A stretch of 64,000 bases of DNA from Macrostomum lignano. Lineage: Eukaryota. The notes beneath the pieces were generated by a model that ran no database searches, was not told where the DNA came from, and saw only the letters and a program-made list of their open reading frames with translations. The DNA is taken from assembly GCA_002269645.1 (NCBI GenBank), contig NIVC01002430.1, positions 72,942 through 136,941 on the forward strand. Direction: 5' to 3'. Shown here piece by piece: positions 40,201 through 49,020 of the stretch. The first letter of the stretch is position 1. Each line of letters starts with the position of its first letter. The translations under genes and the position numbers were made by a program.

Positions 40201-43200
40201 AGACAGACAGACAGACACACAGACAGACAGACAGACAGACAGACAGACAGACAGACACACAGACAGACAGACAGACAGACAGACAGACAGACAGACAGAC
40301 AGACAGACAGATAGACAGACAGACAGACAGACAGACAGACAGACACACAGACAGACAGACAGACAGACAGACAGACAGACAGACAGACAGACAGACAGAC
40401 AGATAGACAGACAGACAGACACACAGACAGACAGACAGACAGACAGACAGACAGACAGACAGACAGACAGACAGACAGACAGACAGACAGACACACAGAC
40501 AGACACACAGACAGACAGACAGACAGACAGACAGACAGACAGACAGACAGACACACAGACAGACACTAAGACAGACAGACGACAGACAGAAAGACAGACA
40601 CACAGACAGACAGACAGACACACAGACAGACACACACTCTGACAGACAGACAGACACACAGACAGACAGACAGACAGACAGACACACAGACAGACAGACA
40701 GACAGACAGACAGACAGACACACAGACAGACAGACAGACAGACAGACAGACAGACAGACAGACAGACAGACAGTCACTAAGACAGACAGACAGACAGACA
40801 GACAGACAGACAGTCACTAAGACAGACAGACAGACACTAAGACAGACACTAAGATAGACAGACAGTCACTAAGACAGACACTAATACAGACAGACACACA
40901 GACAGACAGACAGACAGACAGACACTCTGACAGACACACAGACAGACAGACAGACAGACAGACAGACAGACAGACACACAGACAGACAGACAGACAGACA
41001 GACAGACAGACACTAATACAGACAGACACACAGACAGAAAGACAGACAGACAGACACTCTGACAGACACACAGACAGACAGACAGACAGATAGACAGACA
41101 GACAGACAGACAGACAGACAGACAGACAGACAGACAGACAGACAGACCTGTTAATTAGCAGACCTTACCTCAACAGTAACAACCTGCTGCCCCTTAAAAG
41201 TGAAGTCCAGCAAGTTTGGCGTCAATGTCAAATTGTAATTAATCGGCCTCGAATGAGTTGGCAATTTCTTGAATTCAGTTTTGCCGGACATTTTCTATTC
41301 TCAGTAACAATGGCGTCTGTTTTGATTTGAAGTGCGGGTTTAGGCGGTGCAGTGGCAGAAATAAGTTTGAGCAGAACCATTGGCTGTTTTATGTAGGCTT
41401 TTCATAGCAGCACATGCGGTCAGCTGTCACACTGATAACAGGTGCAACAGCAATGCTACACTTTTGATAATTACGATTACTAAGTTTGCTATAGAAGTTG
41501 CAAGCCTATTACGAGCGTTATATTAACTACCTGAAGCTAGCAAAATAGGACACTTAATTAGTGGCATGCACGGGAGTTGAAAAGAAATAATATTAAAGGT
41601 TCTCTATTAACTACATAACGAATTTACACTCCACTAGTGCATAGTACATGTTTAGTTTCGTGACTGATTTCAAAGTATAACTTATCGCTTCATTTAATAA
41701 TGCAGATCTCGTTTGCAAAATTGCTAGGCTATGATTCTTAAGGTTTTCGAGAGTGATTCTTAGAAAATCAAGAAAGTGACTCCACCTGTCAGAAATTTTT
41801 ACTTTTGGTGTCTTTTAGTGACACTATAAATTTTGAGTGTCAGAGAGCTACTTTTTAATCGCCGGAGAGGACTCTTAAAGTGTCAGAAGAGTGACTGATA
41901 ATGAGCCAGGAGAGTAATTCTTAAAGTGTCGAAGAGTAACTGTCAAAATCCCGGGGTGACTCTCAATGTATCAGGAGAGTGACTCTCACAGTGCTGGAGA
42001 GTGATTTTCAAAGTGCCGGAGAGTGACTTAAAGTGCTGAAGAGTGACTCTTAAAGTACCGGAGAGTGACTCAAATTACCGAAGAGTGTCCGTTTCCACCA
42101 TCCCGCAGCATCCCCACCAAGCGGCTTCAGCCGGGCAGCTTCCTTCTGCCGCTAAGCCGCCATCAATCTGCAGGTCCGCTCCGTCGGCTGCTTCTGTGCA
42201 TTGAAGAGGCCGACAGACTGTCTCAGCTGGCCGAAGACCAGGCTGGAGCAGCAGCCGCCGCCGCCTTCCCAACCTCTACCTGGACCCGACTCGAGCTGGG
42301 ACTTCGCGTGGGCGGCTGCCTTCTCTCGCTGACCGCCCTGTCGGCGGCTGCCGTCGCCGCGTTCGCCAAAACCGACGGTCGCCGTCGAAGATGGCGCCGA
42401 CTGACCGCGGCCGAGTTGAACGCCTGCGTGGCATTCGGCCTCGAGGAGGCCTGCGCCGCGGTTGCCAGCAGCATGACAGCCGGCCTGACTGCCTGTCGAG
42501 TGGTTGCCGCGCTCCGGCACTGGCTGGGACTGGCGCGGGCCTGCGCCCTGCTGCTGCTGACGCTGGATCAGTGGCGCCGGCTTCGGCGTCGTCTGTCAGC
42601 ACCGCAGCGTCGGGACGTTCAACAGCAGCAACAACAGCTGCAGCAGCAGCCCGATCAGCCCCATAGGGTTGGTGCACCTTCTGGTGCGGTCAAAGGAGCT
42701 GCCTCATCGCGGCGACCCGGTTTTAACACCAAAGCTCCTAAGTCGTGGTCTTCAACCCATCTGCCCTCGCGTGCCTTCGGCACGGCTGGCAGGGAGACCG
42801 GTTGTTTTGCTGCTGTCTATCTGTCCCGCCTCGTCCTCTTTGCGCTCGCCCTCACTACGCTCGCCGGGGACATCGAAACTAATCCCGGCCCAGCCTGCAA
42901 CTCATGCAACGGCCCAATCCGCACGGGCATGCACAGCCTGCCATGTGAGGTCCCAGAATGTTCCGAGCGCTGTCACTGTCAGAAGAAATGCAGCGGTATG
43001 CACCGCGCCGAGATTGTCCGATCTCCGTGGCGCTGCTCTGTGCACCGCCCCCTTGAATTGGACTCGGCATCCGCTGCGCACCTGCGTGACCTCCCGACAC
43101 CCGAGCCCCGCATGTCTCAGCCAACGCGCTGTCACAGCTGCTCAGGGCCCATCCGCACTGGCACTACTCCGCTCACTTGCGCTGCCAAAGGTTGCGCTCT

Positions 43201-49020: not shown

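Follow-up and report, generated by a model that had tools for sequence, protein, structure and literature searches.

Does a retrotransposon that lies in frame within a host reading frame owe its position to target choice, or is the merged frame how the element gets translated? This question is raised by a locus of the flatworm Macrostomum lignano, in the window analyzed here (the whole 64,000-nt stretch; contig NIVC01002430.1, positions 72,942 to 136,941, forward strand). A sequence-only reading of the window had described a retrotransposon inserted into the poly-Q loop of a receptor, with a 2A motif near the join. That single-ORF LINEs can carry a 2A signal at the N-terminus was recognized between 2006 and 2013, but the purpose of the signal is unsettled; the published proposal is that it down-regulates the ORF2 protein. 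LINEs bearing 2A are thus a known kind. What is new here is that no ATG precedes the 2A motif and that the 5′ junction is phase-locked to Gln-coding repeats. Taken with the conservation of 2A, these features provide a testable alternative, in which 2A uncouples the element protein from the upstream translation that delivers the ribosome. M. lignano itself is amenable to transgenesis, has a spliced leader ending in AUG and is covered by public RNA-seq.

A single-ORF LINE with an N-terminal 2A motif

Profile searches and comparison of termini identified a complete, intact non-LTR retrotransposon of 4,708 bp with a single ORF (Table 1). From 5′ to 3′, it consists of a leader, the 2A motif, PHD-like fingers, APE, RT, RNase H, a Cys/His knuckle and a (CAA)n tail. 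The APE-type endonuclease lies N-terminal to RT in the same ORF, and Exo_endo_phos, Exo_endo_phos_2 and RVT_1 all score above the Pfam threshold. The 3′ tail is a simple repeat, terminal repeats are absent, and target-site duplications (TSDs) vary in length. The only repeat family that pairs both ends of the element is the CAG-rich TSD (family D9). Because the ORF spans the element from base 1 to nt 47317, there is no room for a second one, and ORF1 is absent. By domain content, the element is an APE-type LINE of the 2A-bearing, single-ORF type.

Table 1. Coordinates of the element, its duplication and the flanking frames within the window
Feature	Coordinates	Strand	Remarks
Putative host exon 1	28268..29319	+	Donor GTGAGT at 29320; signal-peptide-like N-terminus, Cys-rich 350-aa ectodomain
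Putative host exon 2, 5′ part	42109..42650	+	Acceptor ...TTTCCACCATCCCGCAG/C (...CCCGCAG); phase matches exon 1
GenBank 5′-partial CDS (P0087, 1647 aa)	42374..47317	+	Crosses host/element junction; starts 277 nt upstream of element
TSD GCAGCAGCAGC, 5′ copy, 11 bp	42640..42650	+	Letters compared
Full-length non-LTR retrotransposon	42651..47358	+	2 private differences from the other three copies
5′ leader	42651..42868	+	ORF frame open from base 1
2A core D-I-E-T-N-P-G/P	42869..42892	+	Read from translation; preceded by hydrophobic stretch
Three Cys/His-rich (PHD-like) finger repeats	42893..43549	+	
Apurinic/apyrimidinic-type endonuclease	43655..44293	+	Pfam Exo_endo_phos 9.1e-13, Exo_endo_phos_2 1.1e-17
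Reverse transcriptase	45179..45841	+	Pfam RVT_1 8.9e-31
RNase H	46532..46906	+	Pfam RNase_H 4.1e-12
C-terminal Cys/His knuckle	47156..47206	+	Read from translation; also found in relatives
Stop TAG, short 3′ UTR and (CAA)5 tail	47315..47358	+	Tail, 47344–47358
TSD GCAGCAGCAGC, 3′ copy, 11 bp	47359..47369	+	Letters compared
Putative host exon 2, 3′ part	47370..47533	+	Arg/Gln-rich loop, fourth hydrophobic segment; weak donor GTGCGC at 47534
Putative host exon 3	48445..49020	+	Acceptor ...CACTCCAG/; three more hydrophobic segments and tail; GC3 0.76

The N-terminal DIETNPGP is a canonical 2A motif, as the sequence-only reading had it. It is retained in 10 of the 12 relatives read (P0003–P0006, P0008–P0011, P0019 and P0022), which are about 30–40% identical, and occurs at the same position at loci L005–L009. 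A 2A motif by itself is insufficient proof of ribosome skipping (PMC3708506). The relatives have their own ATG, 10–130 codons upstream of 2A, and their tails are (CAA)n or (CAC)n(CAA)n. Metagenomic relatives form head-to-tail arrays, each member lying inside the (CAA)n-type tail of the preceding copy. Matches to PHD, searched for in the relative at L005, were weak.

Comparison with known systems

L1Tc and Ingi of trypanosomes are alike in having a single ORF, an N-terminal 2A (DxExNPGP), the order APE–RT–RNase H, a C-terminal Cys/His motif and TSDs of ∼10–16 bp; the 2A and single-ORF features are documented (PMC3708506, PMC3894237). RNase H after RT is an Ingi-clade trait present here too (Pfam RNase_H 4.1e-12), a likeness of domain layout. 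Unlike L1Tc and Ingi, the element has a (CAA)n tail rather than poly(A), PHD-like fingers between 2A and APE, no ATG upstream of 2A, and CAG/CAA repeats as its target; we detected neither an HDV-like ribozyme nor a 5′ end of the Pr77 type. The 86 matches of a word-limited protein search included no Ingi or L1Tc protein from trypanosomes.

In single-ORF APE-type LINEs, 2A in the N-terminal region, sometimes with a PHD domain after it, is established (PMC3708506, PMC3894237). The 2A-bearing metazoan LINEs (Crack, CR1, Rex1 and L2; e.g. Crack-17_BF and the STR elements; Odon et al. 2013) likewise have an N-terminal 2A and lack ORF1. Those elements were described with their own initiation codon, whereas the one studied here has no ATG before 2A. 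Nor did that survey include flatworm examples or RNase H-bearing members other than Ingi, or report a triplet-repeat target preference or a phase-locked junction.

Microsatellite-specific non-LTR elements include APE elements of the Tx1 and R1 clades, R4/Dong and Togen, going by the summary of Kojima and Fujiwara 2004 in PMC4640811. They too have one simple-repeat target, a 3′ tail related to that target, and head-to-tail arrays, which here are found in the metagenomic relatives. In contrast, the preference of the M. lignano element is for short CAGCAG motifs, including those in coding DNA, rather than for long arrays. To our knowledge, neither 2A nor RNase H occurs in the target-specific APE-type lineages Tx1 and R1, and we know of no earlier description of a LINE targeting CAG/CAA (Gln-codon) repeats. 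A preference for this triplet repeat is added to the LINE specificities.

R2 offers a mechanistic analogy for an element with neither promoter nor ATG of its own, in that it is co-transcribed with a host unit and its ORF lacks a conventional start context. It differs in that its endonuclease is restriction-like, its target is rDNA and an HDV-like ribozyme has been demonstrated; the M. lignano element shows none of these.

Four recent copies share a CAGCAG target

Three more copies (L001, L003 and L004), 99.8% identical, define the termini. The element starts with CCGATCAGCCCC and ends with ...ACCACCAAAA(CAA)n. The TSD of L004, CCTCAGCAGT, is not a repeat, so the exact start and end of the element are visible there. 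Among the four copies, 22 alignment columns differ (19 substitutions and 3 gaps). Every difference is private to one copy, giving a star-like pattern, with 2 in the window copy and 5, 8 and 7 in the others. The window copy is therefore nearest to the consensus of the four. Judged by their near-identity, the four copies are very recent insertions.

TSDs measure 11 nt in the window, 16 nt in L001, 15 nt in L003 and 10 nt in L004, and all four contain CAGCAG. A random site of 10–16 nt contains this hexamer with a probability of 0.3–0.7%, and the joint chance is ∼6e-10; the sample is small (n = 4) and was found through protein-coding copies only. The relatives, for their part, sit in (CAA)n tails. 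The sequence-only reading had ventured that the element may prefer (CAG)n targets, and the comparison of copies strongly supports integration of this LINE family at CAGCAG-containing sites. In target-primed reverse transcription, the (CAA)n tail of the RNA could pair with a (CTG)n/(TTG)n bottom strand, and this pairing probably aids target choice.

In all four copies, the 5′ junction falls one base past a CAG, and the CAG units of the target, read in the phase of the element ORF, are Gln codons. With the units locked to this phase and the ORF open from base 1, sense insertion into a Gln-read CAG run merges the host and element ORFs. Frame bias among copies, which had been proposed for tabulation, was not seen. 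Only the window copy (1/4) is fused in frame. L001 lies in a different frame, inside an Ala-frame GCA run in the CCHC gag-like ORF of another element, and in L003 and L004 the element is antisense to the host ORF.

Identical (CAG)5 runs flank two independent copies, L001 and L003, on both sides. We considered these runs as part of the element and rejected the idea, since the L004 TSD and the 11-nt window TSD argue that they more probably come from the target. A long ORF at 338–4714 on the minus strand, tried as a further copy, is a Pro/Ser-rich satellite. One other copy lies in the C-terminal tail of a Src-like kinase. The element thus strikes coding sequence, there and in the putative receptor of the window, which bears on the tolerance of insertions, both in poly-Q tracts and in polyploid genomes.

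The element ORF is continuous with an upstream frame

In the window, the duplicated GCAGCAGCAGC lies in a CAG/CAA tract, and the element is inserted in sense and in frame. The frame is open from nt 42047 and runs stop-free to 47315–47317. The element plus one TSD measures 4,719 bp (47359 minus 42640), or 3 × 1573, and its deletion restores one continuous host frame. On these points, the sequence-only reading was borne out. Its exon model also reproduces the sizes that it gave: the filled allele would encode 2086 aa, in which NPG ends at residue 611 and 1475 aa follow. For the empty allele, the model predicts a protein of 777 aa. The insertion and the merged 2086-codon frame are real.

The GenBank annotation was built from genome-guided transcripts and TransDecoder (PMC5730564). 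Because its CDS at this locus crosses the junction, the locus is probably transcribed. A search confined to predicted proteins turned up no empty allele or paralogue.

Is the flank a host gene?

A plausible identity for the upstream frame is exon 2 of a membrane protein that is lineage-specific and lacks annotation. Such a protein is predicted to combine a signal peptide with a Cys-rich ectodomain and some seven hydrophobic segments. Exon 1 would be a frame of 372 open codons in DNA of 66% GC (GC3 0.75, like bona fide genes nearby). It has a signal-peptide-like start and many cysteines, and ends exactly at a GTGAGT donor. We found no competing plus-strand exon between 29320 and 42109. The 5′ part of exon 2 (GC1/2/3 = 0.76/0.57/0.72) encodes three hydrophobic segments, then an Arg/Gln-rich stretch and the CAA/CAG tract. 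Both splice junctions of the model are in phase, and exon GC3 (0.72–0.78) matches that of the neighboring aminopeptidase and DnaJ genes. The putative 4 + 3 hydrophobic segments would fit a 7-TM pattern, in which Cys residues precede segment 3 and recur in the next outer loop. A hydropathy scan of exon 2 (19-residue window) gave ∼4 hydrophobic regions, none strong; the three in exon 3 were picked out visually in the translated sequence.

The exon 1 frame and its donor, the in-phase junctions, the GC3 match and the segment pattern count against another reading, in which the supposed receptor frame is open by chance, in GC-rich DNA flanked by repeats, and the ORF of 2086 codons means nothing beyond the element ORF. 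Several observations nonetheless favor it. An index-free HMMER scan of 1.84 billion representative proteins gave zero matches to exon 2, and word-based searches with exon 1 and with restored exon 2 gave nothing, the latter probably swamped by low-complexity words. No Pfam family reached threshold on the putative protein: 7tm_1 scored E = 0.084 (12.8 bits, where the cut-off is 30.5), 7tm_7 E = 0.12–0.56 and, in exon 1, Somatomedin_B E = 0.004–0.011. No match was found in the PDB. The composition is Ala/Arg/Leu-rich, the locus listing contains no separate host gene, and proposed intron 1 would have to enclose the whole aminopeptidase gene on the opposite strand. Frames +1 and −0 of the restored exon 2 DNA are also open, over 223 and 198 codons. 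Single-sequence AlphaFold modeling of the putative 7-TM region was uninformative (helical, low confidence; pLDDT 54, pTM 0.27). We regard the chance-frame reading as unlikely, though it carries appreciable weight. Even the term host ORF may be too generous, given two other open frames of ∼200 codons and the lack of a homologue, Pfam family or gene call. The receptor identity put forward at the outset is thus not upheld; ‘receptor’, ‘after TM3’ and ‘cytosolic loop 2’ are interpretations rather than observations.

Where could translation start?

The leader contains no ATG in any frame, and this is true of all four copies. It does contain a near-cognate ACG in strong context, at 42782. The first in-frame ATG (42929) lies downstream of both the 2A motif and the first CxxC. 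A canonical 2A with no ATG before it, and a CxxC between it and the first ATG, suggest that ribosomes normally come from upstream. Openness of the leader was dropped as a sign of selection, because a second leader frame is open too, which makes it weak evidence.

These features could mean that elements of this lineage lack their own start codon and are built for ribosomes arriving from outside. The start would be supplied either by poly-Q-coding host messages or by a spliced leader joined at acceptors ending in CAG, and 2A would shed the upstream product. Were this so, 2A would be a device for parasitizing host translation, and poly-Q exons would be a preferred landing pad. We consider this general proposition improbable.

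In the first version, the element has given up its start codon and depends on in-frame landing in expressed genes, at CAG runs that encode Gln. Host ribosomes would read into the leader, 2A would free an intact element protein, and the window would hold an active source copy. In accord with this, four recently transposed copies all lack an ATG before 2A, the leader is open from base 1 and locked to CAG = Gln in each, the 2A is intact and clade-conserved, the first CxxC precedes the first ATG, the annotated CDS spans the junction, and the window copy is nearest to consensus. But an in-frame upstream ORF is present in only one of the four copies, the others being out of frame or antisense, and even there its ATG rests on putative exon 1. 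Relatives have their own ATG, and the second open leader frame weakens the argument from openness. A signal peptide upstream may also impair 2A separation or send the product to the ER. De Felipe et al. reportedly found in 2010 that a signal sequence placed before 2A can inhibit it or take the product that follows into the ER. The first proposal, that a fusion with a signal peptide would free a retroprotein into the cytosol, is uncertain. On balance this version is doubtful, and functional use of the host–element fusion as a form of ‘hitch-hiking’ is unproven.

In the second version, the spliced leader brings the AUG. The element would be part of a host pre-mRNA, and the leader would be trans-spliced at the target CAG or at GATCAG/CCC (42658/42659), placing its AUG in frame with the element leader, 2A and ORF. 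The M. lignano spliced leader, CGGTCTCTTACTGCGAAGACTCAATTTATTGCATG, ends in AUG, and every AG dinucleotide from 42626 to 42659 is followed by a base in ORF phase. About 30% of M. lignano genes are trans-spliced, at an acceptor motif ending in CAG (PMC8629364), and a flatworm spliced-leader AUG can act as initiator, according to the account of Cheng et al. 2006 in PMC9851317. However, the candidate acceptors GATCAG and GCAGCAG lack the pyrimidine context [T/C]TNCAG. The annotated CDS starts 277 nt 5′ of the element rather than at a trans-splice site. None of the copies carries spliced-leader sequence, each beginning at CCGATCAG. Trans-spliced RNA would have lost the first bases or would carry the spliced leader, and the copies show neither; such RNA could therefore be messenger but not the template for transposition. 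This version, too, seems improbable.

The 5′ end was also examined for a ribozyme, which the sequence-only reading had taken to be present. An HDV-like self-cleaving ribozyme, as in R2, L1Tc or RTE, would free element RNA from a host transcript, and the related, 2A-bearing L1Tc has one. The 5′ 110 nt are more stable than shuffles (z = −2.4), and a nested fold can be drawn (P1, 42666–42671 with 42713–42718; L3-like CCUCAUCG; GG after). But this sole drawable fold would cut before 42666, 15 nt inside the element, and those 15 nt are kept in all four copies. Moreover, 184 of 300 dinucleotide shuffles (61%) satisfy the same descriptor, and we rejected the candidate. Rfam searches of the window and five related loci, at the gathering score and at a permissive E ≤ 10, returned no ribozyme and no other relevant RNA family. 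A 5′ ribozyme is thus very unlikely.

The fusion as a probable by-product of target choice

We favor, with moderate confidence, a different explanation. The element is one of at least four near-identical recent copies of an M. lignano single-ORF LINE, and the fusion would be a by-product of target preference and phase-locked joining, not selected at this locus. An element landing in sense in a Gln-read CAG run merges the two ORFs, and this has happened here in the CAA/CAG tract of a GC-rich open frame.

Some observations sit less easily with the by-product explanation, which is limited to the four copies examined. The lack of an ATG before a canonical 2A, with a CxxC before the first ATG, fits use of host translation better than accident. 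The closeness of the window copy to consensus is what one might expect of a source copy. A phase-locked 5′ junction is not a known trait of APE-type integration, and the host gene model has no homologue, Pfam support or separate gene call.

Should host ribosomes enter the merged frame and 2A be active, two products are predicted: a fragment of 611 aa, comprising the ectodomain, three hydrophobic segments and the element leader, and a 1475-aa element protein starting with Pro. Across the family, we think it more likely that the element protein is made without the help of host ORFs, with the near-cognate ACG, the first in-frame ATG and the AUG of the spliced leader as candidate starts.

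An insertion that leaves the reading frame open

The element is a 4,708-bp non-LTR retrotransposon with a single ORF and a (CAA)5 3' end (see table). Its translation matches Exo_endo_phos/Exo_endo_phos_2, RVT_1 and RNase_H above the Pfam thresholds and carries three Cys/His-rich PHD-like repeats ahead of the endonuclease and a C-terminal Cys/His knuckle. Locus L002, retrieved by searching for the exact protein, matches window 41001-49000 at 100% identity, placing the window in contig NIVC01002430.1 of GCA_002269645.1.

A sequence-only reading had claimed an in-frame insertion that merges a host ORF with that of the element, and at the sequence level this is borne out. 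Element plus one duplication measure 4,719 bp (3 x 1573), and their excision joins the flanks in one frame, the 3' side reading QEHQRHRQF... In the filled allele the frame is open from 42047 and stop-free up to 47315. With a three-exon host model, the filled allele gives 2086 aa, with the NPG end at residue 611 and 1475 aa thereafter, exactly as predicted earlier; the empty allele gives 777 aa.

Features of the window and of the loci holding further copies
Feature	Coordinates (strand)	Remarks
Element	42651-47358 (+)	
Duplication, window copy	42640-42650 and 47359-47369	GCAGCAGCAGC, 11 nt, both sides of element
Duplication, L001 copy		(CAG)5C, 16 nt
Duplication, L003 copy		(CAG)5, 15 nt
Duplication, L004 copy		CCTCAGCAGT, 10 nt
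(CAG)5 on both sides of copy	L001:9690-9722 and 14431-14446	L003, same positions
ORF holding L001 copy	L001: about 9100-9722	CX2CX4HX4C zinc knuckles
L004 copy	L004:8752-13455	contig NIVC01000001.1; frameshifted
Putative host exon 1	28268-29319	372-codon frame
Putative host exon 2	from 42109	interrupted by element
Putative host exon 3	48445-49020	
GenBank CDS	42374-47317	5'-partial
Upstream ORF	42904-42948	14 codons, out of frame
Aminopeptidase gene (M1 family)	about 31654-41291 (-)	one exon 35413-35742; start about 41291
(GACA)n-type satellite	about 37-41.15 kb	kilobases, aminopeptidase first intron
Tandem repeat	41730-42075	unit about 22 bp, GAGAGTGACTCTTAAAGTGCCG-like
Tandem repeat	47580-48250	20-bp unit, CCCATTTATCCCCTCTAGAT-like
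DnaJ-domain ORF	14589-15488 (+)	E = 1e-20; also matches Cornifin/SPRR repeat family
DnaJ-domain ORF	20115-21269 (+)	E = 1e-25
Pro/Ser-rich open frame	338-4714 (-)	1458 codons

Target preference and frame among four copies

The 90% protein cluster of the element has three more M. lignano members, which we obtained with their flanks (L001, L003 and L004). Across the entire element, their identity to the window copy is 99.75-99.85%. Because the L004 copy is flanked by CCTCAGCAGT, the element proper begins CCGATCAGCCCC and finishes ...ACCACCAAAA(CAA)n. CAGCAG lies on the element sense strand in all four duplications. The chance of this in a random site of these lengths is 0.3-0.7% (background, 117 kb of M. 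lignano DNA), and the joint chance is ~6e-10; the guess that (CAG)n targets are preferred thus holds. At every 5' junction, a single base separates the last CAG from CCGATCAG, which always places the CAG units in the element ORF's Gln phase. The four-copy alignment has 22 differing columns (19 substitutions, 3 gaps), all private to one copy (window 2, L001 5, L003 8, L004 7), a pattern that indicates a recent burst. We accept as real the insertion and its duplication, the merged ORF, the 2A and the preference for CAG.

The L001 and L003 duplications cover the whole repeat (15-16 nt, versus 10-11 nt in the window and L004 copies), and two independent copies have exactly (CAG)5 on both sides. 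Possibly the nicks fell at the repeat borders, or part of the run was made during integration.

The element leader is open from its first base. Given this and the phase-locked junction, an element that lands in sense orientation in a CAG run translated by the host as Gln always fuses in frame. Such a fusion requires no selection at the window locus. A check for frame bias, proposed earlier, revealed none, with only the window copy (1/4) in frame. The L001 copy sits in another frame, inside a GCA (Ala-frame) run of another retroelement's CCHC gag-like ORF; the L003 copy is antisense to a coiled-coil-like ORF of 270 codons; and the L004 copy lies in antisense orientation within the final coding exon of a Src-like (SH3-SH2-tyrosine-kinase) gene. 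The best explanation of the fusion is that CAG-targeting, phase-locked integration struck a Gln-coding tract in a putative orphan membrane-protein gene, with the shared frame following automatically.

The zinc knuckles around the L001 insertion (...CHKCQRFGHSANRC...CNICAAAHRWQEC...CANCGEAHRANYRNC...) make that ORF look like the gag/ORF1-like gene of another retroelement. In L004, the insertion comes directly after ...STDSGYRATAE; the annotated kinase range stops at 13193, within the element, and the kinase CDS appears to run ~90 codons into element antisense sequence.

Where translation of the 2A could start

Reading from the element's first base, the earliest ATGs in any frame are 42904, which is out of frame, and 42929, which is in frame. 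ATG 42929 lies 12 codons past the 2A proline and also past the initial CxxC of finger repeat 1. An ATG-less leader is common to the four copies, all recently transposed, and is therefore compatible with activity. Ribosomes could reach the 2A from the host ORF, as first proposed. A spliced-leader AUG could also supply the start: the M. lignano spliced leader ends in ATG and is added at acceptors ending in CAG (PMC8629364), and each AG between 42626 and 42659 has the phase that this requires. A passage in PMC9851317, citing Cheng et al. 2006, has flatworm spliced-leader AUGs able to initiate translation. A near-cognate codon could serve too; ACG 42782, which has G at both -3 and +4, is one example. 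A further alternative is a start at ATG 42929, in which case the 2A could be a relic. That the family lives on borrowed upstream translation and uses the 2A to free itself strikes us as unlikely; it would be notable if true. The upstream ORF from ATG 42904 (weak context) overlaps ATG 42929 and would lower scanning initiation there.

The next relatives, proteins at about 30-40% identity from ENA, JGI and TARA metagenomes, have their own ATG ahead of the 2A. D(V/I)ExNPGP or a near variant occurs in 10 of the 12 relatives read, 10-130 residues from the called N-terminus, with the first Cys-rich finger directly after. In the contigs holding relatives (L005-L009), tails are (CAA)n or (CAC)n(CAA)n and elements stand head-to-tail, each 5' end adjoining the preceding copy's tail. 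Features of the clade therefore include an N-terminal 2A, PHD-like fingers and, together with a triplet-repeat target, CAA-type tails. On the ENA/TARA marine metagenome contigs L005, L006, L008 and L009, which carry relatives at about 40% identity, head-to-tail arrays were seen in which each new 5' end abuts the preceding element's tail, either (CAA)n or (CAA)n(CAGCAA)n.

Single-ORF APE-type LINEs that carry a 2A near the N-terminus, in some cases with a PHD domain after it, are already published (PMC3708506, PMC3894237), as are microsatellite-specific LINEs (PMC4640811 and references therein). Compared with known 2A-bearing single-ORF LINEs, the M. lignano element differs in its flatworm host, RNase H-containing layout, CAG/CAA target, phase-locked junction and lack of a start codon ahead of the 2A.

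A ribozyme that might cut the host mRNA had also been suggested and is unsupported. Rfam gave nothing relevant in the window (gathering score or E<=10) and nothing at E<=1 in five related loci. Relative to shuffles, the 110 nt at the element's 5' end show a modest excess of structure (z = -2.4). The single candidate that an HDV-like descriptor found inside the element would cut before 42666, 15 nt inside, yet those 15 nt are kept in 4/4 copies; 184/300 shuffles also satisfy the descriptor.

The putative host gene

The host gene is plausible but unverified. In favour of the model, exon 1 has a signal-peptide-like start, many cysteines and a GTGAGT donor at its end, and the phases fit at both splice junctions. 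GC3 is 0.72-0.78 across all the proposed exons, the same as in the aminopeptidase and DnaJ genes nearby, and no competing plus-strand exon lies between exons 1 and 2. Downstream of the ectodomain come four and then three hydrophobic segments. Against the model, two other frames of the same GC-rich exon 2 DNA are open for ~200 codons, intron 1 would enclose a complete minus-strand M1 aminopeptidase gene, and the locus listing has no separate gene call at this position.

Pfam also gave nothing at threshold (7tm_1 E=0.084, 7tm_7 E=0.12-0.56, Somatomedin_B E=0.004-0.011). Among 1.84 billion representative proteins, nothing matched restored exon 2 at E<=0.001; word-based homologue searches with exons 1 and 2 returned none, and the 7-TM region had no match in the PDB; its single-sequence AlphaFold model was uninformative. 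The name 'receptor' is not supported, and the proposed placing of the insertion after TM3, in cytosolic loop 2, is unconfirmed.

The GenBank annotation for the assembly came from genome-guided transcripts and TransDecoder (PMC5730564). Its CDS begins 277 nt before the element's first base and crosses the junction, evidence that the locus is transcribed.

Putative exon 2 is bracketed by two short-unit tandem repeats, one just upstream of its acceptor and one within putative intron 2. The aminopeptidase gene would be nested within intron 1. Elsewhere in the window, the 1458-codon frame consists entirely of degenerate Pro/Ser-rich tandem repeat (PSPSTPSAPPVTLHSFSS...), with GC 0.63-0.66 and very strong GC skew (+0.63 to +0.74), and looks like a satellite, not a gene.
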